Source: Zancudomyces culisetae HAW-14-8
Lineage: Eukaryota > Fungi > Kickxellomycota
Reading direction: 5' to 3'
NCBI GenBank assembly: GCA_052426225.1
Contig: JBNJNM010000023.1
Span: 992,001 to 1,056,000 of the forward strand
DNA length: 64,000 bases
The stretch's first letter is position 1, and every line of letters begins with the position of its first letter. The notes under the pieces were generated by a model. The model was not told where the DNA came from, searched no databases, and saw nothing but the letters and a program-made list of their open reading frames with translations. Shown in pieces: positions 26,318 through 61,952 of the stretch. Both the position numbers and the translations under genes were made by a program.

Positions 26318-26749
26318 ATGGTCAATCTTTTGGTAACAAGTGCATTTTTACTGGCTTCAGGATTTGCAGCTGGCGCAAATATTTCAAGTGTCCAGGTACC
26401 CAACACTAACGGAACCGCTGAAAATTCTGCAAACCACTACAAACGATATGGAGGAGGCGGACCTATCATGAATATTCAAATGTTTAATACATGCTTCTAT
26501 AAAGGCGCAATAGGCTCAATAAAAATACAACCAAATATCTGTTATAACTTGCCAAGTATCAATTCATGTATCCTTGATGGTGGTAATCCTGGTGAAGGTA
26601 AAATCATGTTTTTCACCCAGAATAATTGTATGGGACCAGGAAAAAGCAATCTGAGAAGCCAATGGTTATATCCCGGATGCATGGATGGTGACCTCGGAGG
26701 GCATGCATATTCAGTGCTCTGGCTTGATCCAGTGCCCCAATGTGTCTAA
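26318..26749 (+). CDS. Small secreted Cys-containing protein, crystallin-like family member 1
   Basis: Signal peptide, KR site, motifs FNTCFYKG, PNICYN, FTQNNCMG and SVLW; TATAAAA at 26203. Confidence 0.82.
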   Translation: MVNLLVTSAFLLASGFAAGANISSVQVPNTNGTAENSANHYKRYGGGGPIMNIQMFNTCFYKGAIGSIKIQPNICYNLPSINSCILDGGNPGEGKIMFFTQNNCMGPGKSNLRSQWLYPGCMDGDLGGHAYSVLWLDPVPQCV

Positions 26750-27808
26750 GGTTGTTTAACATTTAAATCATTTTTCAAAATTTGGTATTCTTTTGTTTGT
26801 TAAATAAATAAATAGCAATCATTTTAATTTAACATATAATAAAGACGTTGGAAATAGTAAACAGTATACGTTAAATACCACACCATTACTACTGAAATTC
26901 AGGCGTTGCAATAAAAACAATTGATGATAAAAATTCAATGTACTGCTTTTTATTTAAAGTATCCTGTATTTTCAATCAAGTTAGTTGTAAAATCAATCTA
27001 TGATTATTTTCCTAATAAAGGGATAATCCCATAAAACTCCAATATCAAATCTATGTCAATGTGTGGGATATTAAACCACATAATTAAAGCTTTGATTTTT
27101 TTTATCTACCCAGTCATAAATAAATCTAATCAATAAAAAGCTTACGGGTAGTTACACTTCAAATATGTAAAAACAAAGAGTAATCCAATAGAGGATGTTG
27201 CACGGTTTCTACAAAGTTGTGTAAGTATAAATTTGATCTGAATTAACGGACTTGTAAATCTACAAAGCACCCAACTGGGCAATTGTTCTGAATACAAAAC
27301 ATAATGCACTTTTAGTTTCTCGCACCTCGCCCAGTCTTTCAGATACAGAACGGAGCGCTGCACAGCACCTGTTAGATTCGACATAGAAGGAGCCTATGGG
27401 GGCTACAAATCCATGATGGTAATATAATTCAATTCTCAGTCTTTTACCTAAGCGTTTGAGTCTGTCCTCGTGATCCACCTCATTAAAGTTTGATTCCGAG
27501 ACAAGTTATTAAACTATTGCATATAAATCTTAGTTATGTGCATTTTTTACACTGTGACCAAAAGTTGAGCTAAGTATCAGAGGGTTAGGACTATTGAATT
27601 GATCATTTTCGGGTATTTCCTTTCATTTATTCTACTGCAGTTTAATCTTTGACTTTTAATGGGAATTGATATAGGGATTCTTTAATTCTTGATACTGGAA
27701 AAGTTAAGAATAATAATGGTAAATGAAGGATACTATGTCCAACCTGTGACAGATATATGAAAAAAGTATGAACAAGCGAAACAAAATCGCGAGCTAAAAA
27801 AGCAAGGC

Positions 27809-28634
27809 GTGTCAGTCAGTTCTGTATCACAGCTTAGAAAAAATGTAAAAGCAGCCACGAATACAGCAAAGATAAATAACCGGACAGGAATGAAAAAGAT
27901 AACTCAGAAAAAGAAGGTGGTCAAAACTGAAGACGGGTTATTAGAGATAGATTTGGGTATTTCCAGTTTGCAGGATTTATTTGTTCGAGTAATCGGGAAA
28001 CATATAAAGGATGTCACATCATTTGGAGATATCTCTTCAGATGCCATGAATAAAGTGTGTAGGATTATTAGTAAATATCGGCTTTTGGATAACGACACAC
28101 TTCAGCTCTTCTTAACACCAACGCAGGAACAAAGAACAGACCTAGTGTTGTATGACTGCACAAAAATAGATGCGAATGGGTTATTGAGATTTTATGATTC
28201 TGCTAGTGGAAAACGAATTAAGCGGTTTTTCACTCGTTCATTTGGATTTGGGTGGAGTTTACAATCTTGGTGACAATACTTTAATTTCCATTCTCAGGCA
28301 TTCTAACTCTACAATATTTGAGTCTACACTCTGTAACCAAATTTTAGCAACTAATGGCCTTTCTGCCTTTTCTGGTACTTTTCTTTTCAGTACAGACGAG
28401 GATAATAATAGCAGCAAAGATAAAAATAGCACAGGCACAAACAATTCTCAACTGAAAACACCACCGACAGTTACTCTTCCAACATGCAAAAACCTACACA
28501 CACCAAACCTTTCATTTGTAAGGTCTACTGATCACTCTGCCATACCCACTCTCTTCTCTAATAGTCCTAGCTTATCTACAATGTTTATGAATAGGAAACC
28601 CGAAAGCCATCCCACTAACTTCTTAGTCTGATTG
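27809..28634 (+). pseudogene. RAD7: Degenerate RAD7/rhp7 (NER leucine-rich repeat protein) fragment
   Basis: SLQDLFVRVIGKHIKDVTSFGDI...ISKYRLLDNDTLQLFL...LVLYDCTKI matches Rad7. A frame change near 28190 leads into LRR-like LVHLDLGGVYNLGDNTL. No clear ATG, and most LRRs are missing. Confidence 0.7.
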
Positions 28635-30034: not shown

Positions 30035-33000
30035 ATGAGACCAAGTGTATATACTGCATCCATATCATTGATAGTAGCTAATCTGCTCTCACCAATAGTG
30101 GGAGCATCCACATCGGCTGGAACTGGAAATGTTAACTGTTCTGATTCGATCAGCCAAATTGAAATTGCACAAGGATCTGGCGATAGTTCAGTTATCAACT
30201 ACAATTGGGATAGCGCTATTGACGTTTCTTGCCCATCCCAGGACTATCTTGTTACATTTGATGTCGATCAAACTTCAGATATATATTTTGCAATTAGCAC
30301 ACAAAAATCTTTGCTTACTGGTGAGGAGGTTATTGAAGGTGTAATCGGTGTAAATACTGGTTCATGGTATGTTGGATCTTCGGTATATGTCGCACAAACA
30401 GATATCGCCTCAGGAGCAGCAGATACTCAAAAAGTATATGTTCAGGTTAGCAGTTCAGGTATTGGAATTGGGTTAGTAGGAAGTAGCAAACCAATTTTGA
30501 CAATTTCATCAGCAGATTATGATGCCAGCGCATTCATTAACTCATATGATGTATGGCTTGCATTCAGTGCCGAGAGGGATTCAGCCAAAATCCAAAATAT
30601 AGAGTATAACTGTAATGATTCTACTTGTGAAAACCCATCATCAACCAGCTCAACACCATCAACTCTATCAACCAGCTCAACCCCATCAACCAGCTCAACA
30701 CCATCAACCCCATCAGCCAGCTCAACTAGTTCAACCAGCTCAACCCCATCAACATCATCAACATCATCAACCTCATCAACCAGCTCAACCCCATCAACCA
30801 GCTCAACCCCATCAACCAGCTCAACCAGCTCAACCAGCTCAACCAGCTCAACCAGCTCAACCAGCTCAACCAGCTCAACCAGCTCAACCAGCTCAACCAG
30901 CTCAACCAGCTCAACCAGCTCAACCAGCTCAACCAGCTCAACCAGCTCAACCAGCTCAACCCCATCAACCAGCTCAACCCCATCAACCAGCTCCACTCCA
31001 TCAACTCCATCAACCAGCTCAACCCCATCAACATCATCAACTCCATCAACCAGCTCAACCCCATCAACCAGCTCAACCCCATCAACCAGCTCAACCCCAT
31101 CAACATCATCAACATCATCAACATCATCAACTAGCTCAACCCCATCAACTCCATCAACCAGCTCCACACCATCAACCAGCTCAACACCATCAACCAGCTC
31201 AACCCCATCAACCCCATCAACTCCATCAACCAGCTCAACCCCATCAACTAGCTCAACCCCATCAACTCCATCAACCAGCTCAACCCCATCAACCAGCTCA
31301 ACCAGCTCAACCAGCTCAACCAGCTCAACCCCATCAACCCCATCAACATCATCAACTCCATCAACCAGCTCAACCAGCTCAACCCCATCAACCAGCTCCA
31401 CTCCATCAACTCCATCAACCAGCTCAACCCCATCAACATCATCAACTCCATCAACCAGCTCAACCCCATCAACCAGCTCAACCCCATCAACCAGCTCAAC
31501 CCCATCAACCAGCTCAACCCCATCAACCAGCTCAACCCCATCAACCAGCTCAACCCCATCAACATCATCAACATCATCAACACCATCAATCAGCTCAACC
31601 CCATCAACTCCATCAACCAGCTCAACTCCATCAACCAGCTCAACACCATCAACCAGCTCAACCCCATCAACATCATCAACTCCATCAACCAGCTCAACCC
31701 CATCAACCAGCTCAACCCCATCAACCAGCTCAACACCATCAACATCATCAACATCATCAACATCATCAACTCCATCAACCAGCTCAACTCCATCAACCAG
31801 CTCAACCCCATCAACCAGCTCAACCCCATCAACCAGCTCAACCAGCTCAACCCCATCAACCAGCTCAACCCCATCAACCAGCTCCACTCCATCAACTCCA
31901 TCAACCAGCTCAACCCCATCAACATCATCAACTCCATCAACCAGCTCAACCCCATCAACCAGCTCAACCCCATCAACCAGCTCAACCCCATCAACCAGCT
32001 CAACCCCATCAACATCATCAACTCCATCAACCAGCTCAACTCCATCAACCAGCTCAACACCATCAACCAGCTCAACACCATCAACCAGCTCAACTCCATC
32101 AACCAGCTCAACACCATCAACCAGCTCAACCCCATCAACCAGCTCCATTCCATCAACTCCATCAACCAGCTCAACCCCATCAACATCATCAACACCATCA
32201 ATCAGCTCAACTTCATCAACCAGCTCAACCCCATCAACCAGCTCCACACCATCAGCATCATCAACACCATCAACCAGCTCAACACCATCAACCAGCTCAA
32301 CTCCATCAACCAGCTCAACCCCATCAACATCATCAACTCCATCAACCAGCTCAACTTCATCAACCAGCTCAACCCCATCAACCAGCTCCACACCATCAGC
32401 ATCATCAACACCATCAACCAGCTCAACACCATCAACCAGCTCAACACCATCAACCAGCTCAACCCCATCAACCAGCTCCATTCCATCAACTCCATCAACC
32501 AGCTCAACCCCATCAACATCATCAACACCATCAATCAGCTCAACTTCATCAACCAGCTCAACCCCATCAACCAGCTCCACACCATCAGCATCATCAACAC
32601 CATCAACCAGCTCAACTCCATCAACCAGCTCAACCCCATCAACATCATCAACTCCATCAACCAGCTCAACCCCATCAACCAGCTCCACACCATCAGCATC
32701 ATCAACACCATCAACCAGCTCAACACCATCAACCAGCTCAACTCCATCAACCAGCTCAACCCCATCAACCAGCTCAACCCCATCAACATCATCAACTCCA
32801 TCAACCAGCTCAACCCCATCAACCAGCTCAACACCATCAACCAGCTCCACTTCATCAACCAGCTCCACACCATCAACATCATCAACACCATCAACCAGCT
32901 CAACTTCATCAACCAGCTCCACACCATCAACATCATCAACACCATCAACCAGCTCAACCAGCTCAACCCCATCAACCAGCTCCACACCATCAACATCATC

Positions 33001-33766
33001 AACACCATCAACCAGCTCAACCCCATCAACATCATCAACTCCATCAACCAGCTCAACTCCATCAACCCCATCAACTCCATCAACCAGCTCAACCAGCTCA
33101 ACCCCATCAACCAGCTCAACTCCATCAACCAGCTCCACTTCATCAACCAGCTCAACCCCATCAACATCATCAACACCATCAACCAGCTCCACTTCATCAA
33201 TACCATCAACTCCATCAACCAGCTCAACCCCATCAACATCATCAACACCATCAACCAGCTCAACCCCATCAACCAGCTCCACACCATCAACCTGTGCTTC
33301 CACCTCTGTCGGTCCTAATTCTATTGTATCATCCACTAGCAAAAACAAAGACTACGATTTTGCGCATGCTCTTACAATTCCATGTGATACAAGCGACTTT
33401 GAGTTTACTGCTAGCGTCTCAACCACATCTGATTTCTTTGTTGCTCTTATGGACAGCGGCGGGTACTACAGTTCTAATGGTGTAATAGAAGCACAATTTG
33501 GTTTATCATCTGGCATCAGTTCCATCAAGAAGGGTAAATACGCTTTGGTTAAACGAAGCAAAGTTTTCACAAGAGCCGACTTACAAGACATCAAGATTGT
33601 TAGCAAGAACTCTCAGCTCCAAATATTTATCAACAATGCGCTCAAGTCCACATATAAGGTTTCCAACTTTAACATGACTTCATTGGCCATGGCATCATTC
33701 AAAGGCACTGCATCAGTTTTCAACTCAACATTCTCTTGCCAGAGTATTTCTAATTGTAGCAACTAG
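30035..33766 (+). CDS. Secreted mucin-like protein: two related Cys-bounded beta-rich domains separated by a ~880-aa (STSSTP)n stalk
   Basis: Signal peptide and an uninterrupted 1243-aa frame. N- and C-domains share C..D...T..V...SD...A...VIE...G...G. No GPI or transmembrane tail. Confidence 0.85.
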   Translation: MRPSVYTASISLIVANLLSPIVGASTSAGTGNVNCSDSISQIEIAQGSGDSSVINYNWDSAIDVSCPSQDYLVTFDVDQTSDIYFAISTQKSLLTGEEVIEGVIGVNTGSWYVGSSVYVAQTDIASGAADTQKVYVQVSSSGIGIGLVGSSKPILTISSADYDASAFINSYDVWLAFSAERDSAKIQNIEYNCNDSTCENPSSTSSTPSTLSTSSTPSTSSTPSTPSASSTSSTSSTPSTSSTSSTSSTSSTPSTSSTPSTSSTSSTSSTSSTSSTSSTSSTSSTSSTSSTSSTSSTSSTSSTSSTSSTPSTSSTPSTSSTPSTPSTSSTPSTSSTPSTSSTPSTSSTPSTSSTPSTSSTSSTSSTSSTPSTPSTSSTPSTSSTPSTSSTPSTPSTPSTSSTPSTSSTPSTPSTSSTPSTSSTSSTSSTSSTPSTPSTSSTPSTSSTSSTPSTSSTPSTPSTSSTPSTSSTPSTSSTPSTSSTPSTSSTPSTSSTPSTSSTPSTSSTPSTSSTSSTPSISSTPSTPSTSSTPSTSSTPSTSSTPSTSSTPSTSSTPSTSSTPSTSSTPSTSSTSSTSSTPSTSSTPSTSSTPSTSSTPSTSSTSSTPSTSSTPSTSSTPSTPSTSSTPSTSSTPSTSSTPSTSSTPSTSSTPSTSSTPSTSSTPSTSSTPSTSSTPSTSSTPSTSSTPSTSSTPSTSSTPSTSSIPSTPSTSSTPSTSSTPSISSTSSTSSTPSTSSTPSASSTPSTSSTPSTSSTPSTSSTPSTSSTPSTSSTSSTSSTPSTSSTPSASSTPSTSSTPSTSSTPSTSSTPSTSSIPSTPSTSSTPSTSSTPSISSTSSTSSTPSTSSTPSASSTPSTSSTPSTSSTPSTSSTPSTSSTPSTSSTPSASSTPSTSSTPSTSSTPSTSSTPSTSSTPSTSSTPSTSSTPSTSSTPSTSSTSSTSSTPSTSSTPSTSSTSSTSSTPSTSSTPSTSSTSSTPSTSSTPSTSSTPSTSSTPSTSSTPSTSSTPSTPSTPSTSSTSSTPSTSSTPSTSSTSSTSSTPSTSSTPSTSSTSSIPSTPSTSSTPSTSSTPSTSSTPSTSSTPSTCASTSVGPNSIVSSTSKNKDYDFAHALTIPCDTSDFEFTASVSTTSDFFVALMDSGGYYSSNGVIEAQFGLSSGISSIKKGKYALVKRSKVFTRADLQDIKIVSKNSQLQIFINNALKSTYKVSNFNMTSLAMASFKGTASVFNSTFSCQSISNCSN
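30635..33292 (+). repeat. Coding minisatellite built from 9-nt units (e.g. accagctca, accccatca, acatcatca)
   Basis: About 2.65 kb of 9/18-nt periodicity, including a pure (accagctca)n run near 30815-30960. Confidence 0.95.
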
Positions 33767-35566
33767 GTTTGTTTAATATTTTTTTTTGGTTACTAGGTTT
33801 TGAAAATTCCACTTTAATAAATTTTAGTAGCAAATCAATTGATTTTCTAATATTCAGCTTATCTACTTATTAGTATACGGAATGCTTCAGACTTTGGAGA
33901 AACAAATATAATTGAATGAAAAATGACGAGATAGAGCATTCAAGAATATATCACAGTATCAACACATTCAAATTCAAGACCAAATCTTATACTGATTGAA
34001 GTACATAAAACTTGAGAGAATGAGTAGTTAGAAATACCTCTTAAACCGGAGTCACATATATGTTTAATACATATTGAAAGAAGAGGCAATCCAAAATTTT
34101 ATCTTTAGTCAAGCTGCGAATAGCAATATTTTTAAATGTAGCCTGTAGAACAAGAATTATTATATGGATCAATTATGAGCATAGATATCATTGATCCAAC
34201 AACCAATGGGCAAGGCTTTCATAGCGGAATAATAAGGTGTTGATTGATAGAGTTAATAAGAGTTATGCCCTGCAAACTTGTGCTTTATTTGCATAGTAAT
34301 TCATTGCTGACAAAGAATAGCCACTGTTGTCCCGTGATGCTAGAACGCATTAAGGCCATATTTTTTGCGTAGTTTCACATTATCTAACAATATTGATGTT
34401 TAAATTGACCTACTAAACTTTTTCAATTTTACTTCATTTATGCTAAAATACTAGGCTAATTGAACCGAAAAATGTGTTTTTTGCATCTCGATAACTCAAA
34501 ATACGTATGTCTTCTCATCATTTATGGTACAGTTTACACTTTTTTTTAAAGTTCTAATTATTAATATAATCAAGCTTAATAGATAAATTATAAGCTATTG
34601 ATATCATCAACATACAAATATGTCGTGTATTCTTCATAGTTTAATGTTGAGTTAAGCCATATCCATTTTTCTGAATATATTTATAACAGAATGAATTTGA
34701 AATTTAATTTGTTAGCTTTGATTATAAAGCGTGTAACTTGCATTGACTGATTGTCTATTAGTATGTCCCCTATATTGGACCGCCGATTAATATTAGAGGA
34801 TGGAGGTAATGGTCGAGACATTATCACTTTGGTTCCGAATTTCAATGTAATTATTTGCTAAAATAAAAAAATCAACACACTTTTTTTCAAAAGAGCAGAA
34901 ATACAGGTGACTCTGTGTTTTGATTCGTTCATGGAATCATGTCTTTTTGTTATATATAATTTTTCTGGTGCACCTATATTAGTGCAACACTTTTTCTATA
35001 TTTAACTCGATTCCAAAAATAATATATCGCCTCTAGAATATTTAATAATGCGTTGTGTGTAAACTATTTCATTTACAAAACTATCTTCCCTAAACGAAGA
35101 ATTTTGTGCAATTTTAATATATAAAATGTATTGCAAATTGAGTACCCGGATTTTAAATCACCATAGTTCTGAAACCGGAGGGTATTGACCGAATAAAAAA
35201 ATCTGTTTGATTGTATTAGATAATAATTATAAAATTTGCTTATATTTTTGTTGGAACTTGTAGGACAGTCAAAAAAGTGTATAACAACAGTTGAACATGA
35301 GTCAACAGAATATCTGAGATAACTCCAAATGCACGTGTGGTTAAAAAATAAAACCATAAGGTGTCAAAATTAGAATACATTTTTCAATATATTTTTTAAT
35401 ACACTCGCTCTAGTATCACCTAAATATAGTTCAAAGTGTAGAATAACAGAATTTTTGTACCATTCTAAAATTAGATTGTTAAATGAACCATTAAAAATGA
35501 AATAAGGTCGTCGGTTTAACACTGTATTAAGAACACTGTAAAAGGTGAACTAGGATGAGGGAAAGG

Positions 35567-35573
35567 TATAAAA
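35567..35573 (+). promoter_or_regulatory. TATA box (GTATAAAA context) of Tyr/Gly peptide gene 1
   Basis: TATAAAA lies 150 nt upstream of the ATG; equivalent elements lie upstream of 44896 (near 45050) and 50030 (near 50180) on the minus strand. Confidence 0.6.
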
Positions 35574-35716
35574 GATTCAAAATATCGTTGACAAAAAGAA
35601 AAATCATCAACTATTGAAGTTTCTTCAAGTATAATCCAAATTAAAAGCATAGTCATTATAATTTATAATAAGTGCATTAGCTACATACAACGCTCATTTT
35701 ATACTAAATATCAAAA

Positions 35717-36175
35717 ATGGTAAAGTCAACACTCGCACTCCTCACAGCCACAGTTGCCACAGTATCAGTAAATGCTGCAGTTGCCCCAAGACCAAGAGCA
35801 AATGTTGGTCCTATGCAACCACCAATGGGACAAGTCCAGGACTTTGGAAGATATGCTCCACCATCTCGCCCTGCATTTAACAGACGCTTTGCTACACCAG
35901 CCTACCGCAAACGTGCTGACGAAGAGGAAGATGCCCCAGCAGAAAATGCTAGCGCAACTACTGATGCCACCCAAACTGCTGATGCTGTTACATCTGATGA
36001 CAGCTCTGCGCTAACTGTTGATGGTTCAGCAGATGGAAACAGTACAGGAAATGGAACTGATGACCGTTGGTGGTGGGGGGGATACTACGGGTACCCATAT
36101 TACGGCGGATACTACGGCTATGGCTATGGCTACGGATACCCATACTATGGCGGATATTACGGATACTACTGGTAA
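35717..36175 (+). CDS. Secreted precursor of a Tyr/Gly/Trp-rich peptide, copy 1
   Basis: Signal peptide; basic Pro-rich segment ending RKR; acidic spacer ending GNGTDDR; C-terminal WWWGGYYGYPYYGGYYGYGYGYGYPYYGGYYGYYW. Paralog at 44474-44896. Confidence 0.9.
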   Translation: MVKSTLALLTATVATVSVNAAVAPRPRANVGPMQPPMGQVQDFGRYAPPSRPAFNRRFATPAYRKRADEEEDAPAENASATTDATQTADAVTSDDSSALTVDGSADGNSTGNGTDDRWWWGGYYGYPYYGGYYGYGYGYGYPYYGGYYGYYW

Positions 36176-37825
36176 TTTGTCACATCCGAATCTCATCTTA
36201 TTCCATTTGTTCCTATAACATCGAGTTTGTAGGATTTAATTTTATTTAATTTTGTTTAAATAAAATATCCGGTAAATTTATACTAGAGGTTCAGATCCTA
36301 CCCATGTATATCAGTCAGATCCTAATCAACATTTGAATTTAAAGCAAAGTCGTAGTTTGTAGTTTAAAAATTATCCTACATTCGGATTTATCAATAATAT
36401 TTAAGCTATTAGTATCTGTAAAGAAAGAATTAATAACTTGTATCGACTGAGTATAAAACTTACTTTGAACGAGCTTTAAGTGTGTATGAGACATTAAAAT
36501 GATAAAGATATAATTGTTATTCATTTTTCTAAAGAATTATTTACCTTTGAACTATAAATATTTACATACTCGATTTGGCAATGTAGTTTTTAATTTTGAA
36601 TTATATACATAAGGTTAGTGTGCATGGAGCAACTTTATTCAAACTTGACGCTTTATCCAAACGTTAGATTATTTTACATTTAAATTACTTTTTTGAATAG
36701 TAAAGCATGGGCACGTGTTCTAAATAATTTATATAATTTTTGATAAATATCATTTCTTTCCAACATACGTGGTTTAAACGGTAAATACCATATCAATATA
36801 AAAAAGTAAAAATATATTATAACAAGAAGTGTCCATTTAAACCTAGTGAATGAATATTGGGTCTTATTGAGATATTCTTGAAAAATATACATGGCTAATT
36901 TTAAAAATCAAGCGTTTACTGTATACGTACTACTACAGTCGTTTTTTCTACATACCAAAATTCCTTCTGATCTAATAGTGAGATTAAGAAATTGCCCTAA
37001 GGTACCCTGTTTGACGTTATAATGATTAATTTTTCTTATCTGAAAGTCGTTTAATACACCAGAAAAATAGTATCTTGAAATCACTAAAATACCAAGGTAT
37101 ATCGAGAGGTTTCTTAGTGGTAATAACTTTATACGTGCAGGGTTTGAGTAGCTGGTAGAAGCAGATGGCATATGTGTAACCTACGCACATTTGTAAGCTT
37201 TTTTGATTTTAGGGAGAGTTTGTAAGCAGATTTCTCTAGTCTAGTCTGGTCAAGTATCTTGTGTTCTATGATATAAGATCTAAATAACACAATTACTTGG
37301 TAAACTATATTCTTGCTGGAAACTAAAATATTACCAAATGAATTCCATGTTATTTATTATGATAACAACCAAAAATAGGAATAAATTTCCAATCACAAAA
37401 TAAAGAAAATATTCAGATCAAAAATCTTAAAAAATTTATAATGGAATAAGAATAGAAAAAGTGTTTAATAATATCAGTATATTTAATATAGCTAAAAATT
37501 ATTTAATTGACCAAGGAAAATGAGACTGGCTATGTGGACGACTACAAACTTATTATGAAGTAATAACGGATATAATAAACATTTATAGGTAAGTTTTATA
37601 ATAGTTTTAACTGTACCAAATAGCAATATCAAAAGCAGGAAAAATTTCATTAGGAGTCTCTTTAACTCTTTTGGTGATTATAAAGAATATTGTAAACAAG
37701 GAATCTGCTTAAAAAAATGTTGATTAAAGAATTACAGGCTATAAGGATAATGTCGTGTGGATCCCGATACATAAATTGATTCAACAATTTCAAATAATAT
37801 TTAAATTACTTATTAAACAATCAAC

Positions 37826-38224: not shown

Positions 38225-39106
38225 ATGAGTCAAAATGCAAACGTTACAGTTGAAGTTTTGCAACAGATTTTGGAGAGATTATCAGCTCTTGAAAAACAAA
38301 CCGCACCAAATGATCACATGTCAGTATCAGAAATCAGTGATTCAGCAAACATCACTGCTCCATCAATCGTTGATGCAGTCGACGATGATTCAGTTGAAAA
38401 CTTCGTGGTTGCCAGACCAACACCATCAGACCTGGTCATGTATCCAAAACTGCAAAAGGCGCTACCAACAGTTGAACAGGATTTCTTTTGGACACCACTG
38501 GCAGATGTCGAACGCAAGAAGTTTTACGCAGCCATCCCAAGAAACTCTGGCATGGATTATGAACCACCAGAGGAAAACATCAAGTTATCAGGTGACAATA
38601 AACGTACTGATGCGATGTTATATGACATCCAGTACCGTTTATCAGCCGTTACAAGACCTTTGGATTACTTCATGCACGAAGCAATCCGTGACGGAGGTGC
38701 AGTCAGTGCCGAAAAACTTGCAGTTTTTATCAACTCAATCAGAGTTTTACTTGCGGATGTTGCATCCAATATCACGCAACAAAGAATCAAACTGTCGTAC
38801 AAAGCCTCAGGAGTACCATCAGATCCTCCAGAAATGGTTTCAACATCAAGGAAGCCTCTCGTGGACATACAGCAGATGCTCGAAGTTAAAGCAGCTGCAA
38901 ATACATTGCAGCGTGCAACAAAAAATGTGCAGCAGAGAAGACCAAGATTCAACGCAACCAGGACCTTCCCAAGCATTCCGTTTCAGCCATCAGTTAACCA
39001 GAATGTTCAAGCAGAGCCGCAGCAGATCCAACAACAACGACAACACAAATCCGCTGCTACTGGCGGTAATTTTCGGTTTGCAAACAGCAGCAAACACCGA
39101 AAGTAG
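38225..39106 (+). CDS. DIRS gag-like ORF1
   Basis: First ORF after the left ITR; D..LYDIQYRLSAVTRPLD segment and Gln-rich tail; directly precedes the VGGRL start of pol. Confidence 0.78.
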   Translation: MSQNANVTVEVLQQILERLSALEKQTAPNDHMSVSEISDSANITAPSIVDAVDDDSVENFVVARPTPSDLVMYPKLQKALPTVEQDFFWTPLADVERKKFYAAIPRNSGMDYEPPEENIKLSGDNKRTDAMLYDIQYRLSAVTRPLDYFMHEAIRDGGAVSAEKLAVFINSIRVLLADVASNITQQRIKLSYKASGVPSDPPEMVSTSRKPLVDIQQMLEVKAAANTLQRATKNVQQRRPRFNATRTFPSIPFQPSVNQNVQAEPQQIQQQRQHKSAATGGNFRFANSSKHRK

Positions 39107-39120
39107 GAGGGAGACTGAGG

Positions 39121-42036: not shown

Positions 42037-42068
42037 CCCACCCAATTCCCACCCATACCTAGCTCAAC

Positions 42069-49363: not shown

Positions 49364-49670
49364 GAATAACCTCTTTGAACAAACTACCAGTAGGTATAGA
49401 ATCTTTGAGAAAGTCGAGTAAGAAATGCTTAGTAGATATTATTTGGAGTTTTTTACCTACTAATCTTTGGATATTTAGTATATTTGTGACAAGATAAAAT
49501 TTTTTACTCAAATTAAAATATATCTTTGTGTGTTTGTGTCACTTTGTTAACTATATTAAAGTTAATATGCTAATCATTTTGATAATAGAATTGTAACTTT
49601 ATTCAAGTATACGTTCAAATTAAATAAAAACAAATTTACTACCAACTAAACTATGCTCTAAAGTAACAAT

Positions 49671-50030
49671 TTATTCGTTGGCGGCAAGACCGAATGCTAT
49701 CCATTTCATAGAAAGAACGTTTGTACCGATATCAAGATAGAAGTCCCAATTACCTGTTCTTATAAAATCGGTGTTTGCCGTACATACACCCTGACAATTT
49801 CTTTCCCTACACATTATAAGTGCTCCTGATCTATCAGTGGGGTTAAGGTATTGCCCCGATCTGCCAGGGTTAATGTTATAACATTGATTTTTTACCATCT
49901 GGAGCTCATCCACGACAGCACCAGAAAATCGATATCCTGAAAATATTTTGGCATGCAGGGTTTGAAATTTAGCATTTACTGGAAACGTAGAAACTACGGC
50001 CGCGAGAAGTGCTAGTGTTGACTTTACCAT
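49671..50030 (-). CDS. Small secreted Cys-containing protein, crystallin-like family member 4, with a Tyr/Gly-family signal peptide
   Basis: Leader MVKSTLALLAAVVSTFPVNA; motifs IFSGYRFSG, KNQCYN, GALIMCRERNCQGVC and SMKW. Confidence 0.82.
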   Translation of the reverse strand: MVKSTLALLAAVVSTFPVNAKFQTLHAKIFSGYRFSGAVVDELQMVKNQCYNINPGRSGQYLNPTDRSGALIMCRERNCQGVCTANTDFIRTGNWDFYLDIGTNVLSMKWIAFGLAANE

Positions 50031-52517
50031 ATTTGATACTCGAATTTAAATAAAATTGTGACAAGCTAATGCGCTGATGCAGTATGAAAATGATGATGAC
50101 TATAATATGTCTTTTTGTCTTGTATAAAGAAACTTCAATTGTTGATGTACATCTTGTTTCAATGATATTCTGAACATTTTATACTTTTTTTTTTCTCTCT
50201 GTTACATCTATACTACTCTTGAAACCGCGTAAGATGACCAATTTTAGTGTTTCCAATATATTTTAAAAAGTGTTCAATTTTAAAAAGTCGAGAAAGCATC
50301 TAGTTTCAAAGCATTAGGCTGAATGAAAGTGTACTAAAAAATGATAATTTAGGTGTTATGTAATTCATAGCTTCTAATTTTAATCTTTGACAACTTTTCT
50401 ATATTTGCTAGCCTCGCTTACAATGTAGTGGTATACTAGAACTAGTAATCTTATAAGGTAGTAGAGCAATTTTTTCTGCTCATGAATTGTGCCCTTACTG
50501 TAACTGGTAGATTGAAAATAATTTTGTAATTTTTATCTAATCAACACTAATTCTGTTCCGATTTTTTGATTTCGCAGTTCCGATAGTTTAAAAGCATTAA
50601 ATCCCAACAAGTAAAAACGGTTACGTAATTGAAATAAATAAATAATAACATCCAAATTTGATTTACTATTTGAAAAGGTTTATCTAAAGCGATATTTTAA
50701 TTCATCTAAAAATAACACTATTCCACAAAATTCCCATTAAAAAGAGAAAATAGACCCATAAACTATTATACGTCCTTGAAAAAGACGTAAAACCGACAAA
50801 ATGATCCGTTCCTGCAATTCCAAGGAATAATACTCTTTATTTCGATACTTCCCGACAAGAGGTGGCCATTGGGTTTAATTATTAGATTGGTAATAATTAC
50901 AAATCTGTTTTGAACCTAAAATTACGTTTCTATACCTCTCACCAACGAATACACCAGATAACTAACAAGGCCAAAGAGCATTTTAAAAGACAAGATAGAT
51001 TTCGAGTTTCTAGCCTCGAGAAAGACAGCACTTACACTAATAAATTATTCAAAGGCATTTTCTATTAATAAGTGAGTAGAATTAACCCGTGTTTTAAATC
51101 AAGGTGTATTATCAATCACACAATGTGATGTATTCATATGCTAATGATGCTTTCAGTTTACCTAATAATAATGGCCTTAATATATCTCGATACCAAGCTA
51201 TTTGAAAGCTAAAGTAACGTGCAAAACATTCTTACAAAGATAGAAAAGAACGGAATCAAATTGTTTTTAATGTCTAAATAATAGCCTTATGAATAAATAT
51301 TTACATGTTTCCATCAAAAAGAGTACACTTGGCTTATAATTATAAGTAAACAAAGCCCAATAAAGTAATATTAATCTTTATATGTGGCATGGTCAACCAG
51401 GAGACTACCCTAGCCTCATACTTGTTTTTATTTAGTATGTAAATACTGGAGTTTCAATAGTATACTCCAAGGTGTCGGTTCGATTTATCGTGAAATTGCG
51501 AGTTTTTAATGTTGATCCTTTTTCCTTCAACACTTTAGATTGTTTTTAAAACTTGCTCATTAAATCTTATTTATAAAAAGATTAAATTACCTAAATTAGA
51601 ATCATGCGCCTACCTAGTCTTGAAATTAACATGTAGAAGAGCCTAATTAATATGTCAATTATCTCTAAAGGCATAAATATAATTCGTACTATAATCCCGA
51701 AGTGAGGTTAATAACCATATTTGCTTAAAATGGGCCAATCAATTAAGCGCTAGAATTTGAACAAATCTTTCAACCAATAAGAACTCGGTACATCTATCAT
51801 TACAAATATTCTCGTATCACAATTATATAGGTATATGCAACATATTCAACAAATTATAAATGCTGATTACGATATGATTTAAAATAGAATATGCAATTTC
51901 AAAAAAAAACAAGCGTACTTCGGGTCATCTAGTACATGATAAATAATTTACAAACCCTGAATGCCACCGGTACCGTTTATACTGTGATATGTCTTTTTTT
52001 AGATTTCACATTTCCCTCAAAAACCGGAATAGATTACTAAAAATAATTTTTTTTCGCTTTCGTTCAAATGCAAACGGCCAAAAATATTGATTCTCTAAGT
52101 AAAAGCCTTTGTATTTCTTTAATTTTTAGAGAACATCAAGGTAAAAGCATTGACATTAGGTATCATAAAACAAGTTATGCCCATTAAATGTTAACTCTGA
52201 TACCTATTAACACACTTATAAATATAATAATCTAAATATAGTTCTACTATTCTGAGTGAGCTGATAGAGGAATGAATTCGTCATTGATTCGGATATATTG
52301 ACAATAGTTGTAATGTCATTGTTACCAGCTATCTAGCAATTTTGTCTAGTAACTTTTAATTCAATACACCATTATATTTACAAACAAGAAGGTCACAACA
52401 AAAAAAGTATAAAAAGTCCAGGTTTTTTTCAGAATCCTATTCTATACAATTCAAAAACATTTCAACTGTGTCCTAGATAAAAGGTGTTTAGATTAAATAG
52501 TCAAAAAATAAATTAAG

Positions 52518-52940
52518 ATGGTAAACATTTTGTTGACAACCGCAGTTTTGATTGCCTCAAAGCTTGTAGCTGGTGCTAGCATTCCAGATACCCAGACAAA
52601 TATTTCTAAAAGGCAAGACGACGACAATCGCAACATCTGCTATGGAGACAATAAAAAGCAATACCCTAACAAATTTCTAAATATTGAAATGTTTGCACAA
52701 AGGTCAAGGATAAATAGAATTGGTTTCAAAACAATTAATCCAAATCGATGCTATGTCATGCCAACTACTGGTTCCTGCTTGCTTAATGGTGGTACGCCTG
52801 GTGAAGGAACAATAATGTTCTGCACTGGAACCAACTGCGATGGTTACTGCCGGGCTCAGCCAAGACAAGTCTGGTATACCCCCGGAGATATGCAGAAAGA
52901 TATTGGAGGGCTTGCAAATTCAGTTTATTGGACAATTTGA
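52518..52940 (+). CDS. Small secreted Cys-containing protein, crystallin-like family member 5 (closest to 26318)
   Basis: Signal peptide, KR site, motifs PNRCY, SCLLNGGTPGEGTIMFCTGTNCDGYC and GGLANSVYW; TATAAAA at 52408. Confidence 0.85.
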   Translation: MVNILLTTAVLIASKLVAGASIPDTQTNISKRQDDDNRNICYGDNKKQYPNKFLNIEMFAQRSRINRIGFKTINPNRCYVMPTTGSCLLNGGTPGEGTIMFCTGTNCDGYCRAQPRQVWYTPGDMQKDIGGLANSVYWTI

Positions 52941-55014: not shown

Positions 55015-55055
55015 TTAGATTTTATTAATTTTAATCTAATACTTTAAAATAATCT

Positions 55056-58000
55056 TAATATATTTAGTTGAATATAATATAAACTAATTATTATTATGCA
55101 AATGCCAGATACAATTATGTGTGTTACCAAATCTTTATTTAATTTCGAATTCTTTCCTAGATACTAAATAATTAAACCCCAAAATTTATTTCAAATGTTC
55201 CAATATGTTCGAAATTTCGTAATCTGAAATTATGAAATCAAGAATAATCTAAAGAGTTTGAATTCAGTACTAAAATTTCTCATAACATTTGGGTTAAAAA
55301 TATGTAAAATTATCTTAAAACAACAACAAAATGAAAATAAAGTATATAAACCGTCTGTTTTCCAGTTTTCTTGAGTTCCTTACCATCGGTTGAGCTAGAC
55401 TAAATCGGAACAGGGTGAGACATAAATGTATCTGGCATTCGCATAATAATATTAAGTTTTGATTTCATTCAACTAAACATGATAATTTGCTACATTGACC
55501 AGATAAATTTATAATGCTTCAGAGTTTAATACGTAAATGTCAAATTTTCTCTTGTTCTACGTGATAACTGATAGTATGTATCAAATATTCCTCTGCTTGC
55601 CCAAAATCCTTGGGTAATAACATCATCGTATGTTGCACCTGATGAAGTAGCACGAGTAGATCCATGTGCTCTTGCCTTTGGTACTTTAGCGTTTGGCGGT
55701 AATGGTATAAGCGACATAAGTTTGTTAATGTGCTTGCTAATACGCTGTGCTCCAATGTTAGTACTGTGGTCCTTGAGACTCCTGATGAGATAGGATATTG
55801 AGTTTCCGTCGAGCAAAGGATGTGGTTTTACGCATGGTATAACCTCAATCCGCTTTTTGTAAACCTGATAAGTTTCAACCGGAATAATTTTTTGTCAGAG
55901 TGTGCATGGATTATAGAAACTTTTTCAATTGGAGTTCCATTGCGTTTCTCCTTTGATCCAACAATAATAAAATTGATGTATTCTCTTGTCACTGACGTCT
56001 TGCTGTCGTCAATCCTCTCAATGTCGCTTGGCCTGAGAAAGCCACAGATGGCTATGAGCCAGCATAGTTTTGCAGTCAAGTCATACTTTGACATTCTGGA
56101 GTTAGGCCCAAGTTTCCTGATGTGGTCAATGATTGGACTGATGTCATAAAGCGATATGTCAAAGAATCTGACGTTTGATGAAGATAGTTGTTTGAGATAC
56201 TCTTTCATTAGTGGATCGTCACTGAAAGAAGCCCAATCACTGGTTATGCCAAGAATGGCGGACTTGTAGTTTTTGACTGTTCCGAGTCTCCAGTTTAGCG
56301 CTTTGCGTTGCTGCTCCAGATAGTTGATAACGTCAACGACTGTTACGTTTTCTATGGAGATTAAAGATGTAGAAAGCCACTGTAGGAACTTGGTCTTCGG
56401 GCTCAGATATTTCTTCTGCTTGGTCTTAACTCGAGTGTTGTCGAGCATCAAATTGATGACCTGGTCATCTAATCCTGCTTCCTGATACCTTGCGCGCTTA
56501 ACCGCCAAGCCGTAAGTGACCATGTCTTGTTGCGCATTGTCGCTGCTTTTCCGCTTCTCGGGTCTGGGATAACTGCTGACGAATGAATCTTGATTGGCGG
56601 TGCAATTGACAGGCTCTTTAGGTCCGGATACCACGGGGCTGATCTCCAGAACAGCGTGATCAGAGTCGCTGTGATCCTCTCCTGGCGGATCTTTTGGATG
56701 GTACGCTGGATCAGATTCCACAGTGGACACAAGTATGGATTCTTCCACACTGTCCAACTGTGGTTGAAGGCGTTGATCCTGACTGCTTGGGGGCAGTATT
56801 TCCAACACACAAATGTGTTCAGTTTGTGATTGGTGCTGCTCGCAAACATGTCGATATCGTGAGGACCAAAGTATTTTTGAATCCTTTGAAACACTCTTTC
56901 CGATATCGACCATTCGGTCTGCAAAGTAAGCCGGGATGGGGCGTCTGCCGGATTCACAATGGATGGTACGTACTGGATCTGTACCCTGGTCCCGTTGCTG
57001 ATGCAGTGTTTCCACATCAGTTCCGATATGTCTAGCAGGTTGGGCGATCTGGTCCCTCCCTGTTTCTTGACATAGCTGATGGAGGTGTTGTTGTCGCAGT
57101 ATACAACCACACTCCTGCCCTTTACCTGGGGCATCTTGATAGCCTTGTATATGGCTAGTAGCTCCTTGGCGTTGATCGGGAGCTTGGACTGTGCTTTGGT
57201 CCATATTCCTGAGTACTGGCTCTGACCAATAACTATCCCCCAATGGAAGTCGCTCGCGTCTGTGTAGACTTCCACTTCCGGAATCTCTGGGAGGAAGCTC
57301 AGGCCGTTCCATTCCTTCAGATGATCTCTCCACCAGATCAGGTTGTCTAGAGCTGGCTGATCCAAAGATACTTCTGTGCTACAATCCCGCGTGGTCCGCA
57401 GGGTAGCATTCTTGAGCTCCAAAAGCCTCCTGCTCATGAGTCTGCCTGGACGGAGAGCGATGTTCACTACCTGTGTCTTGCAAATGAAAGACGATAAGCA
57501 TCTCAGCGTCGTCTTCCCATTCCTGATCAGTTTGGATGCCTCTCGCGTAAGATCCCTGAGTTTCTGCTTGGGAATCCTGAAGCTCATTTGGCGGGTGTTG
57601 ATGTCCATACCCAAATGGCTGATAGACTGCTTGGGGTTCATTGACGACTTCTCGTTGTTTAAAATGAACCCTAATTTGGCTAGCTTGTTTGCAACCATCG
57701 TAGTGTACTTGCTACACTCGCTTCTGGTTGATCCCAAGACCAGCAAATCGTCCAAGTAGCTCGAGATTCGGATCCCTCGAGCTCTGGCCCACTTGAGAAC
57801 TGGCTTTAATATTTTGGTGAATACTAGCGGGCTTAAGGACAGATCAAATGGCAGTACCCTGTACTGGTAGACGCGATGGCCTCACGTCAACCTGAGATAT
57901 TTTCTTGACGCCTTGTTGAAGAGCACATGCAAGAAAGCATCGCTGAGATCGATGCTTGTCATCCAGTCACCCTTTCGCAACATTCGCGAGATGGTGTTCA

Positions 58001-58455
58001 GTGATTCCATCTTGAAATGCTGCTCGGGGATGTACTGGTTTAAAGGTCTCAGGTTGAGAACCATCCGTGTTCCTCCATTCTTCTTTGGGACGGTGAATGT
58101 CCTTGAGAAGAATCCTGGCTGCGCTGCTGAAACTTCCTCTATAGCTTTTTTGGAGAGGAGACTTGTAATCTCCTGCTCGACGAGCTTTTCCGGAAGTTTC
58201 ATTAAGTCCTTCACGCACGGCTTTGGCTGCTTGACCGTGCGAGGATGCGCATTGAAGGGGATTCGGAACCCTTCCTTGATCACCTGGAGTACCCATTGGT
58301 GATCGGTAAGCTTCTTCCATGCCTCCTGGAATAGCTTCAGTCAACCCCCTACTTTCGGGGTCTGATGCTGCTGCCACCCCGAAAATTATTCTTAGGAGTA
58401 TTGAAACGGGGCTGCCTCTGCTCCTGGACCAACTGTGGCTCTTTGAGCTGTGACT
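55056..58455 (-). mobile_element. Second DIRS element, 5'-truncated and pseudogenised (gag tail, RT/RNase H/MT, YR, ICR, right ITR)
   Basis: Protein-level homology to 39121-41913. Stop within RT at 57882, frameshifted YR, ICR near 55420-55480, ITR about 55056-55387. Left ITR and most of gag are missing. Confidence 0.92.
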
Positions 58456-58897: not shown

Positions 58898-59315
58898 CTA
58901 AAACAATGATAGTGGTGGTGGTCATGGCCTACATTTTTGGAGGGGCCAAAATATTTGCCTATACTTTTGCCTACACTAGTGCCTACACTTTCGATTGCGA
59001 TGACGGTGGCAGTAAGGTCTGCATACTTTACGACGACAACATTTGAGATCTACAAATCCTGCATTATAGTTTAAAAGGTAGACGTTTTTGGGGGCTAGTT
59101 CACCTTTTTTTTTACATACCTTGTATTTGGCTAAGTTGGCCGTGTGGAGGTTAGTTTAATCTTTCATTTTTATATTATTTTAATTATTATTTTTAGTACA
59201 CTACCATTATGTGAAAAAAGTTTTTTAAAGATTTTAATTTGGCTAGATCACTATCTTGGGATTGAGCGGAAACTGAAAAGAGTGCAATAAGGCACAACAA
59301 TTTGATTATAACCAT
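58898..59315 (-). pseudogene. Pseudogenised paralog of the His/Arg/Cys-rich secreted gene at 22772-24214
   Basis: Reads MVIIKLLCLIALFSVSA, PHGQLSQIQ, NVYLLNYNAGFVDLKCCRRKVCRPYCHRHRNRKCRH*..., with frameshifts and stops. Upstream ccatcctgtgc and tataaccgggttc are shared with 24211-24275. Confidence 0.78.
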
Positions 59316-61544
59316 CCTGTGCTGTTGTCTGGCTCTTTATTCCGCATGATTTTTGCCTTATATAACCGGGTTCCTACAACTGCGTGACTAGCTAACTAGA
59401 AAAAACACAACGAATTGCTGTTAGATCTTGGCTGCCAGTACCTCTAAGTTTTTTATTTTGTATTCCTGTGCCTGAAGTTTTATTATGACATATAACACTA
59501 CTATATTTTATTACTGCTTCTTGCTTGTTAGCTATCTGTGAGTGCAACGAAATGATACTAAACTAAATCACGGTATTTTTGACATTTTTATATTTTTGTT
59601 AGATGGAATTTTAAATACATATTTTCTACAATATACAGCTCGCTTGTGGATAGTTGAGTTTAGTTGACCTTCTCTCTGATATTTACTTTTAACATGAGTA
59701 TTCCAGTTTTATTTTACTAATAAATAATTATTAAACTATGTATACTTTCTTCTATTTATCATTCTAGATCTTTTATAAGCGTCATTTATGGTTATTAAAA
59801 GTTACAATCAAATATACTTATTAAGAACTAGATCAAAAAAAAGTTAATTTATCGCACTGACAGGAATTTTATTTTAGTTCTAGCTAAAGTCATTAATTTA
59901 TTAAAATTGAGCCCATAAACTTAGCAAACCTGAACTTGATAATTTACTAGAGCCTAAAGAATATAATTGAATGTTAACTTTTATTTAGGAATAATGTGGG
60001 GTAATAATCATCTAGATCAATCACAATATTTACGATATTACAGCTATTGGTTTGGTGGTTATTTATTGAAATGTATGATCTCACACTCACGCACTATTTG
60101 TTCATAAAAAGGTCGCATTTAATTTTTTTTTGATAGAAATGTATAGTAAAAGTGTATGGGTGTTGAGATTTTAGAGTTTCGGAGATCATGAAGTTGGACT
60201 GAAAAGATTTGAAATATAACATGTCCGAGACTTGCCCTAAAAATTCTCACATTTTTTTTGGCTTCACGAACGGAAGTTGACATTTTTTTCTTATTAAACG
60301 GGATTTTTGCTATCTTTATTGGGTAATATTCTTTTTGTTTTATTTAATGCTTTACAAGTCAAGGACAACTATAATTTGATATTTTGTTTAGCTTTTAAAT
60401 TCATAATAATATACTTTGATAAGTTGATAATAGTCCAGATTGTGCTAATAACTTTTTAACAAGTCAAGAATAACATTAATAAATAGTTGAAAATATATTT
60501 TTATTCTCATACACCCAAGCTACAAAGTTGATGTAATAAGCCTTTAGCGTTTTTCAAAACTTTCAAGCATACAACACTTTTTCTAAACATTTTTTTATAA
60601 ACAGGTATTTGTTTTTGTCCTTGTAACATTTTGAATTAAAGCTAATATGAATCATCCATAATTTAAAACCATATTTTAGAATAACTACACTTAAACAATA
60701 CCAATTATACAAAAAAACTGTATCATTTATGAATGTAGCGAAGGATATGACTATTTTTAAAATCAATAAAAAGAGAATAAAGTAAGTGGCTCTACATTTG
60801 GTAAACAAAAAACACTTTATAAGTAGATAATTAAAATATGCCAAATAAAATAGTAGTTTAAAAAGTCATGAATAGATGCCATCAGAATATGTATCCTTCT
60901 TATAATTGTAAAACTAAGTATCGCAGGAATATGATACTATAATTGTTTCTGATTATTTACGCAGTGATAATTGTTTAAACTTCATCCAACTAAACATATT
61001 AAAATTGATGTATTAAATAGCTTATGAACACAAAATTGCACGGAATAAATCACATGTTAGGTGTAAAGAGATGCATGTATTCTCGCACCGTTAGACGATG
61101 CTTTTAAATCTCAAATTATTCATATTACGGGTATTTATATATATGACATAATTATGTTATAATTATGTGTCACATCTTTACCTCTTTAATTAGCACTGAA
61201 AACTATTATAGAAGTTTGAAAAGATAAATGCTGAACATATTTATCAATCTATATTAAAACATTCAGTGTGATAATATATGTCAGACGGAATCCTTACACC
61301 TTTTATGAAATACATTATTTCAAACTGTAAAATCTACTGGCTGTTAAATAATGCCAGGTCATACCCGATTTGAAATTTATTTCTAGTAAAACCACTTTTC
61401 AAATATGCTCCAAACATCATAATTTAATGTTGACGAACTTCACTAAACGTGTTTATTTCATAGATTTCGGTTCTAATATTTAAAAGATTTTCTATCTCTA
61501 AATCAAATATCCATACGTTAAAAATAGTCGAATTCTGACTCTAA

Positions 61545-61952
61545 CTATGCTAGGAACCAAATCATAGAGTTTGCAGGTCCTCCAACATTGTCAGCTTCCA
61601 CATCATATGGGTAAAGCCAGGCTTTTCTACTTATAGTTGTACACTTTCCACTACAGTCATTACTGTGGCATAGTGCAGCCCATCCGCGCCCTGGTTGTCC
61701 ATCGTCAAATCGAAGTGATAGGGCACTTGGTAATGAGACACATCTGTTTGGTCTTATATTTAGGGTTTCACCTGGACTTTGGAGATTTTTCTCTTTGAAC
61801 ACTTCGACCTTCATTCTAGCACTGCGATTTCGACAAGAACAAAGTCTGTTTGGTCCAATTGGGTATCTATTGTGTTGGCGTAAAGACAAGTCACCCATGC
61901 TGTTTGCAAAGGTTAGTCCCAAAGCTGCTGTTCCGATTATAATGGTCTTCAT
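61545..61952 (-). CDS. Small secreted Cys-containing protein, crystallin-like family member 6
   Basis: Signal peptide; motifs VFKEKNLQS, PNRCV, DGQPGRGWAALCHSNDCSGKC, WLYP and GGPANSMIW. Confidence 0.82.
   Translation of the reverse strand: MKTIIIGTAALGLTFANSMGDLSLRQHNRYPIGPNRLCSCRNRSARMKVEVFKEKNLQSPGETLNIRPNRCVSLPSALSLRFDDGQPGRGWAALCHSNDCSGKCTTISRKAWLYPYDVEADNVGGPANSMIWFLA

Follow-up and report, generated by a model that had tools for sequence, protein, structure and literature searches.

A mostly subtelomeric family of secreted proteins with a predicted beta-gamma-crystallin fold in the mosquito-gut fungus Zancudomyces culisetae

What are the six small, divergent secreted proteins encoded near a chromosome end of the mosquito-gut fungus Zancudomyces culisetae, and what might they do? 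We analyzed a 64-kb stretch of DNA from strain HAW-14-8 (contig JBNJNM010000023.1, positions 992,001 to 1,056,000; hereafter referred to as the window), for which a first-pass annotation, made from the letters alone, had proposed a six-member family of secreted beta-gamma-crystallin-like proteins. All six genes were found as intact, intronless open reading frames (ORFs), here numbered m1 (26318-26749, + strand, 143 amino acids (aa)), m2 (42568-43011, - strand, 147 aa), m3 (48032-48484, + strand, 150 aa), m4 (49671-50030, - strand, 119 aa), m5 (52518-52940, + strand, 140 aa) and m6 (61545-61952, - strand, 135 aa). Each starts with a typical N-terminal signal peptide, in line with the secretion that had been claimed, and cleavage is predicted, for example, between MVNILLTTAVLIASKLVAGA and S in m5 and between MVKSTLALLAAVVSTFPVNA and K in m4. 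The proposal had been staked partly on whether the six sequences align significantly, which they do: pairwise BLASTP comparisons scored 22-97 bits, and profiles built from any five members found the sixth with E values from 9e-9 (m4) to 7e-24 (m5) (Z = 6000 targets). In the six-way alignment, the N..C, S, G, C, G and S..W positions do not vary, as expected from the shared Cys/Trp scaffold described earlier. Judged by sequence, m1-m6 are demonstrably homologous, with similarity beyond chance.

We next examined the fold of the shared domain, which had been predicted to be a two-Greek-key beta sandwich. AlphaFold2 models were built for the two types that differ most, m5 with a 41-member set (A2) and m4, the most divergent window member, with a 49-sequence set including other Harpellales species (A3). 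The m5 model was all-beta, with a predicted local distance difference test (pLDDT) score >95 for its modelled domain (residues 50-140), and the m4 domain had a pLDDT of ~90. A Foldseek search of the Protein Data Bank (PDB) with m5 returned crystallin folds for all listed matches (probability 1.00; E from 1.5e-3; target-normalised template modelling (TM) score of 0.57-0.65 against single-domain targets), including lens gamma/beta crystallins, the Neurospora abundant perithecial protein (APP), IPSE/alpha-1, AIM1 and a Ciona crystallin. In a Foldseek-independent VIA-align scan of 48,161 chains, crystallin domains made up almost all of ranks 1-17 for m5 (Z 6.5-7.9, root-mean-square deviation (rmsd) mostly 2.3-2.9 over 75-82 aa) and almost all of the top ~22 for m4 (Z up to 8.7, with an rmsd of 2.5 over 79 aa). 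Taken over both models, the crystallin matches had Z scores of 6.3-8.7 and rmsd of 2.2-3.0 over 74-86 aa, and below this block the scan dropped to unrelated folds at Z ~4. The single-domain antimicrobial proteins named in the first-pass annotation were also matched, namely MiAMP1 (Z 6.5 for m5 and 6.3 for m4), WmKT (5.2 and 6.8, respectively), SKLP (4.5) and AFP1 (3.4-4.0). Moreover, the nearest structural clusters of an ESM Atlas single-sequence model of m5 were the Inhibitor_I36 and Crystall families, and language-model features for m4 gave I36, Crystall and MiAMP1 clusters as neighbours, which we treat as leads only. The Z scores are middling, but we hold to the fold reading because the match list is uniform, the matches cover the full domain and two prediction methods agree. 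The models therefore support a wedge-shaped, two-Greek-key beta sandwich of ~88 aa belonging to the beta-gamma-crystallin superfamily.

The signature residues of this fold were then counted, with m5 numbering, across 97 distinct sequences of the family after alignment to its hidden Markov model (HMM). The Ser that precedes the last strand of each Greek key was well conserved (S86 in 80 of 97 sequences, with Ala in 13; S135 in 93 of 97), as were G109 (90 of 97) and W138 (88 of 97), and all four core cysteines (C78, C102, C107 and C111) were present in 86 sequences. In the second hairpin, the classical aromatic-x4-aromatic-x-G spacing appears as C102-x4-C107-x-G109 followed by C111, so that the family form reads (C/Y/F)x4CxG. 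C102 and C111 were lost together in nine sequences and never singly, all nine kept C78 and C107, and eight of them carried F or Y, the canonical crystallin residue, at position 102. One of the members without this pair is m1 (F and G/P instead), which had already been described as lacking two core cysteines. Because C102 and C111 are co-lost, we infer two disulfides, C102-C111 as a staple of the a2-b2 hairpin and C78-C107 as a link between this hairpin and strand c1. The canonical form of the first hairpin is seen in m1 (FNTCFYKG), m4 (FSGYRFSG) and relatives from Smittium and Furculomyces (e.g., YSKSYYNG), the first two motifs being present as originally reported, and loop insertions occur in most Z. 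culisetae members. Reading of the alignments showed that the calcium-binding motif N/D-N/D-x-x-S/T-S is absent at both Greek keys, where the m5 equivalents are M-P-T-T-G-S and G-G-L-A-N-S.

Dibasic propeptide sites, noted earlier for several members, are a common feature of the family. A KR, RR or RRRR site lies ahead of the domain in 34 of 58 distinct members from genomic loci, modally 24-28 residues before C78 and directly ahead of strand a1 (e.g., RPRRRR/VRKLTLELF and KR/TLEMQMF, with the slash marking the site). In the window, such sites occur in m1 (KR), m3 (RR, 26 aa ahead of the first core Cys) and m5, and are absent from m2, m6 and m4, the last of which has no propeptide at all. Kex2-type cleavage is predicted to release a four-Cys domain of 91-95 aa (about 92 aa, ~10 kDa), and the median isoelectric point (pI) of the mature parts is 9.2. 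Larger architectures were found among the relatives. The Z. culisetae proteins P0030 and P0041 (312-313 aa) have a Ser/Thr/Ala/Val/Pro-rich stalk of ~220 aa, followed by KR and a single domain without the C102/C111 pair, and P0009 of Smittium mucronatum (296 aa) has three tandem crystallin domains with no dibasic sites between them.

We then searched the genome (27.1 Mb in 25 contigs, the window being C23:992001-1056000) in six frames with the six-member profile and obtained at least 150 scored matches among 209 candidates (E 4e-54 to 2e-6). The family is thus far larger than the six members first proposed. Of the 150 scored matches, 129 had no in-frame stop and 21 (~14%) had stops; given this fraction, the family is of the birth-and-death type. 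The matches were strongly concentrated at contig ends, with 106 of 150 (71%) lying within 80 kb of an end, a zone that holds ~8% of the genome (binomial P ~1e-80). Since all six contig ends that were checked finish in TTAGGG/CCCTAA arrays, these zones are real subtelomeres, and the right telomere of the contig is 14.5-78.5 kb away from the window.

The m3-m4-m5-m6 spacing (~1650, 2810-2880 and 9000 bp) is repeated nearly unchanged on C8, C11 and C13 at their right ends, and in inverted order at the left ends of C21, C9 and C8. In all, the block was found at seven or more chromosome ends, often with proteins that are identical between ends. This sharing was read from the coordinates of protein matches, as a 20-kb DNA self-search was swamped by a 3.4-kb repeat element. 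Identical copies of m3 occur on C8 and of m5 at three other chromosome ends, and the type amplified most is that of m6, which recurs almost identically at many ends. The subfamilies are mutually only ~20% identical. As chromosome ends share the m3-m4-m5-m6 spacing, the six divergent window genes are members of separate subfamilies rather than recent duplicates of each other, and copying from one chromosome end to another has involved whole blocks of several genes. The m3-type copies at C13:2033147-2033574, C9:57414-57841 and C21:29513-29940 are each broken into two pieces, 1-102 and, in a different frame, 102-141, with a stop. That three ends share this break suggests that the block was copied with a pseudogene in it.

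Decay is also visible within the window, where the six-member profile was run over all open frames. A decayed member at 27100-27605 (- strand) has an early stop after its ATG, further stops and frameshifts, and 47% identity over 96 aa to an L039-type member. A decayed m4-type copy at 36911-37180 (- strand) retains the YYFSG hairpin, with the first core Cys substituted and a premature stop after the CxG region. A second m4-type relic at 43653-43868 (+ strand) is 5'-truncated, keeps the C-terminal ~70 aa of the domain (44.8 bits) and has no start codon or signal peptide upstream. A possible further relic at 43984-44130 was dropped, being too weak at 30 bits and full of stops.

To assess whether the genes are maintained, we estimated omega, the ratio of nonsynonymous to synonymous substitution rates. 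Pairwise NG86 values for the domain ranged from 0.0 to 0.75 in close pairs, with a median of 0.6 for 182 pairs. When 17 phylogenetically independent paralogue pairs were pooled and partitioned by the secondary structure of the model, omega rose from 0.23 in the signal peptide to 0.39 in strands and 0.72 in loops, with 0.55 for the whole domain, and a global maximum-likelihood codon model gave 0.36, a rough value as the tree is saturated (length ~47 per codon). On the strength of the partitioned values, the genes are maintained as coding sequences, under purifying selection overall, with a constrained core and nearly free loops. Positive selection at some loop sites would be consistent with this pattern. 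The family had originally been described as diversifying, and we dropped the claim of demonstrated diversifying selection, as no pairwise, partitioned or global omega exceeded 1.

The distribution of the family outside this genome is narrow. An HMMER profile search of 1.84 billion cluster-representative proteins with the 41-member query yielded 38 proteins at E <=1e-3, and all ten of the stronger matches that were looked up were Z. culisetae 'hypothetical proteins'. Distant relatives came from Smittium mucronatum, Smittium culicis and Furculomyces boomerangus; with this profile, confident relatives were found only in Harpellales. At 50% identity, the family forms ~30 clusters in Z. culisetae versus one to three in each other Harpellales, so the expansion looks lineage-specific, with the caveat that subtelomeres collapse in short-read assemblies. 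The 20 public clusters that were looked up were named 'hypothetical protein' except for one UniRef 'Pectate lyase' (P0038 of Furculomyces boomerangus, 117 aa), a label unsupported by the sequence or a Pfam scan and probably an annotation artefact. Two multi-domain proteins from outside Harpellales, P0036 and P0039, were borderline matches (E 3e-4 to 8e-4), one encoded on a short contig adjoining a VOMI-domain gene and the other on a metagenome contig. P0039 scores above the Inhibitor_I36 gathering score (25.8 vs 21.1 bits) and its other domain lies nearly at the Crystall threshold, which makes it a possible, if thin, sequence bridge to canonical crystallins.

Searches against named families agree with the original view that the family has no name. 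Pfam scans of m1-m6 and ten relatives at permissive thresholds (E up to 1-10) returned noise only, with no match to Crystall (PF00030), Inhibitor_I36 (PF03995), PF09207 or MiAMP1. Six-frame scans of the whole genome gave nothing for PF03995 and nothing for PF09207, the latter a weak blank as its control matched nowhere either. A profile search of PDB sequences found no crystallin, its best matches being an antibody complementarity-determining region and a fimbrial chaperone at E 0.1-0.4, and a word-based homologue search with m5 returned m5 itself and one Z. culisetae paralogue only. An exact-sequence contig look-up with m6, aimed at transcript-derived contigs, had none on record. We found no description of the family in the searchable literature on Harpellales genomes, zygomycete secretomes or crystallin-fold effectors. 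Having failed every named Pfam model tested, these proteins are, by sequence criteria, best regarded as a new family within the secreted crystallin-fold class.

We propose that m1-m6 belong to a Harpellales-restricted, mostly subtelomeric family whose members would be made as prepro-proteins: the signal peptide is followed, in most of them, by a short, variable propeptide with a dibasic Kex2-type site at its end, and then by one beta-gamma-crystallin domain of ~90 aa. In this domain, the aromatic pair of the second Greek-key hairpin would have been replaced by cysteines, two putative disulfides would staple the fold, and the mature product would probably be a small, usually basic and stable extracellular protein. 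The family has probably grown and decayed through the copying of multi-gene blocks between chromosome ends, with a beta-strand core under purifying selection and hairpin and inter-strand loops that seem to drift almost freely. We estimate a probability of roughly 0.9 for this account of fold, secretion and family structure. As to function, the mature proteins may be binders or toxins of the gut lumen that target the surface polysaccharides or wall-building machinery of competing microbes, much like the single-domain proteins WmKT/HM-1, MiAMP1, SKLP and AFP1, and loop variation might widen their range of targets. By analogy, we rank this antimicrobial or competitive role first among functions, at a probability of about 0.4, because the single-domain, secreted, disulfide-bonded relatives of known activity are antimicrobial or wall-binding, and because candidate effectors and antimicrobials with the crystallin/WmKT fold are recognised as a class in fungi, for which some authors favour action on competing microbes (PMC10462633; bioRxiv 10.1101/127746). 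A bolder version, which we consider doubtful, is that the family forms a telomere-linked, rapidly reshuffled arsenal of more than 100 diversified, killer-toxin-like crystallin domains, variably expressed, that influences which bacteria and yeasts live in the larval gut or acts on the host gut surface.

Several observations weigh against the proposal. No Pfam model of the crystallin clan matches family members, and the sole sequence bridges to canonical crystallins (P0036 and P0039) are borderline. The pairing of the disulfides is derived from co-loss, not from coordinates. WmKT has 10 cysteines and MiAMP1 has six, and the four core cysteines found here differ from both. The mature domains of four of the six window members are near-neutral to mildly basic (pI 6.7-8.6). 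Omega is below 1 in every partition, so no arms race is demonstrated. Finally, antimicrobial relatives match the models no better than lens or calcium-binding crystallins do, and the same fold serves in glycan and mucin binding, adhesion, protease inhibition and spore coats. Since the crystallin fold has so many known roles, it cannot by itself pick the function. Four further explanations were weighed.

The strongest of these is that the proteins face the host, as binders or effectors that recognise glycans or mucin-like proteins on the cuticle of the larval hindgut or in the peritrophic matrix and aid attachment of the thallus or holdfast, or that modulate the host in the manner of IPSE/alpha-1. 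The fold matches would accommodate such a role, as they include the mucin-glycopeptide-binding X409 domain of StcE (9gsm, 3ujz; Z 5.2-6.0), the C-terminal module of a fungal fucosidase (4ni3, Z up to 7.7), the adhesion protein DdCAD-1 (Z 4.5-5.2) and the schistosome egg crystallin IPSE/alpha-1 itself (Z 7.0-7.7), and the long stalk ahead of the domain in the P0030-type paralogue points in the same direction. Subtelomeric expansion is typical of fungal adhesin families, and subtelomeric diversity would fit the wide host range of the fungus. In most members, however, neither an anchor nor a repeat stalk nor a signal for wall linkage is present, and cleavage by Kex2 would set them free as 10-kDa proteins; moreover, Z. 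culisetae sits on the cuticle and does not enter host tissue, which limits its access to host cells. We regard a host-facing function as rather unlikely.

Two other roles appear improbable, and to a similar degree. The proteins might be I36 (SMPI-like) protease inhibitors that shield the thallus from digestive proteases of the larval gut, a protease-rich habitat; among structural clusters, the one that best matched the m5 Atlas model was 'peptidase inhibitor family I36' (TM 0.49 by query and 0.55 by target), feature searches gave I36-bearing clusters, and P0039 passes the corresponding gathering score. Nevertheless, PF03995 was blank in both the members and the genome, no reactive-site loop could be identified, and the >150 diversified copies exceed the apparent need of a generic shield, while the Pfam I36 model overlaps generic crystallin domains, so that the label carries little functional weight. 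Alternatively, the proteins might be needed in bulk for a structural or stress role in spores, the holdfast or the wall matrix, like Myxococcus Protein S, Physarum spherulin 3a and the Neurospora abundant perithecial protein. The many identical subtelomeric copies would raise dosage, and the three proteins just named rank high in the list of fold matches (1prs and 1nps, Z 6.8-7.3; 1hdf, Z 7.3; 5z6e, Z 6.7-6.8). The calcium-binding motif on which those proteins depend is, however, missing here, the domain is basic and held by putative disulfides, not acidic and stabilised by calcium, and the low identity between subfamilies ill fits simple dosage.

That the genes are largely functionless passengers of subtelomeric segmental duplication and neutral decay is very improbable: the stops in 21 of 150 matches, the three window relics, the m3-type copies frame-broken at three other chromosome ends and the loop omega of 0.72 would all fit, but omega is well below 1 in the signal peptide and strands, 86-93 of the 97 distinct sequences retain the four-Cys/Ser/Gly/Trp scaffold, two further genera of Harpellales still have relatives in three species, and ~129 matches have no in-frame stop.

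Microbial antagonism thus stays first among the candidate functions, and we further compared the family with known crystallin-fold systems. It resembles the beta-gamma-crystallins (lens gamma/beta, Ciona, geodin, Protein S, spherulin 3a and Neurospora APP) in its predicted double Greek-key wedge of ~88 aa, in the Y/F-x4-Y/F-x-G first motif of m1, m4 and the Smittium and Furculomyces relatives, and in the conserved Ser of each motif. It differs from them in the (C/Y/F)x4CxG form of the second motif, in lacking the calcium motif and any Pfam Crystall or I36 match, and in being single-domain, secreted, provided with a Kex2-type site, mostly basic and present in ~150 copies. With WmKT/HM-1 (1wkt, PF09207) it shares a single secreted crystallin-fold domain of ~88 aa (Z 5.2-6.8), and WmKT, a killer of sensitive yeasts that blocks the synthesis of beta-1,3-glucan, is likewise basic and freed from a prepro-precursor by a Kex2-like protease; PF09207 nevertheless has no match here, and WmKT is a single gene in its yeast, whereas this family is subtelomeric. 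MiAMP1 (1c01, PF09117), SKLP (1f53) and AFP1 (1gh5) are also single-domain, secreted, disulfide-bonded crystallin folds with antimicrobial or chitin-binding activity, but they come from different kingdoms and have no sequence match to the family, whose four-Cys core contrasts with the six-Cys spacing of MiAMP1. Peptidase inhibitor I36 (SMPI, PF03995) belongs to the same fold clan, although its HMM matches neither the members nor the genome.

A further parallel is offered by candidate effectors of plant-pathogenic Dikarya with the crystallin/WmKT fold. Ecp4, Ecp7 and CfCE44 of Cladosporium fulvum, together with a 'Crystallin' orphan-effector family (PMC10462633), are small, secreted, Cys-containing proteins that are crystallins by predicted structure. 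Like the present family, these candidate effectors are sequence orphans without the calcium motif that sometimes follow a kexin site. Theirs, however, number few per genome in plant pathogens of the Ascomycota and Basidiomycota, whereas the family described here has ~150 copies concentrated at telomeres in an early-diverging insect-gut commensal. It is this combination of a Cys-for-aromatic Greek key, copy number, telomere linkage and host organism that we consider unusual.

Secreted crystallin-fold proteins known as a yeast killer toxin, as antifungals of plants and Streptomyces and as candidate effectors of plant pathogens come from single genes or small families, and here the fold reaches ~150 copies in a commensal of disease-vector mosquito larvae. 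If antimicrobial or gut-binding, they would form a main interface of the fungus, the gut microbiota and the host, and would amount to a natural library of ~10-kDa disulfide-stapled binders. Should the arsenal version hold, its copies would serve as contingency genes for warfare among microbes in a fungus of an early-diverging lineage, and could supply new, stable antimicrobial scaffolds of interest for the biology of the vector microbiome. The family also exemplifies the apparent replacement of a Greek-key aromatic pair by a disulfide, as well as probable promoter and signal-peptide swapping among unrelated subtelomeric secreted-protein genes.

Evidence of such swapping comes from m4. Its promoter (~200 bp, including a TATAAAA box) and its entire signal-peptide coding region closely match the corresponding parts of two Tyr/Gly-rich precursor genes, at 35717 and 44896 (49951-50400, - strand, compared with 35347-35796, + strand, and 44817-45266, - strand). 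The similarity stops exactly at the predicted signal-peptidase site, at the codon of ...GTAAATGCT, and the Tyr/Gly-rich precursor genes are otherwise unrelated to m4. This sequence pattern indicates that a promoter and signal-peptide module has probably been swapped between families of secreted proteins. Both m4-type relics lie within ~1 kb of the Tyr/Gly genes.

The remaining parts of the window fall into two zones. Housekeeping genes occupy 1-24 kb, and the subtelomeric secretome island begins at ~24-26 kb. The ordinary genes of this inner, centromere-proximal third encode a SUN-family beta-glucosidase-like protein (6749-7864), a FATC-bearing PI3K-like kinase of 2058 aa (11455-17631) and an aminotransferase of class I/II (19457-20701). 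Within the island, 30035-33766 (+ strand) contains a 1243-aa ORF with a GC skew of -0.6, long ORFs on both strands and no Pfam match, which looks like a lineage-specific island gene for a low-complexity, mucin-like secreted protein. Overlapping long ORFs (293-579 aa; guanine-cytosine (GC) content 38-42%; no Pfam match) at 38225-41588 (+ strand) may be the remains of a mobile element or a frame-broken gene that lacks annotation. The 3.4-kb repeat element occupies 55049-58452, is GC-rich (48%) and has long ORFs (55828-57333 and 56469-57755, - strand) without a Pfam match. Its copies at seven or more other loci (on C3, C6, C15 and C21) are 95-96% identical, and inverted pieces of ~300 bp from its first end adjoin copies. 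A 75%-identical fragment of the same element lies between m3 and m4, at 48950-49366.

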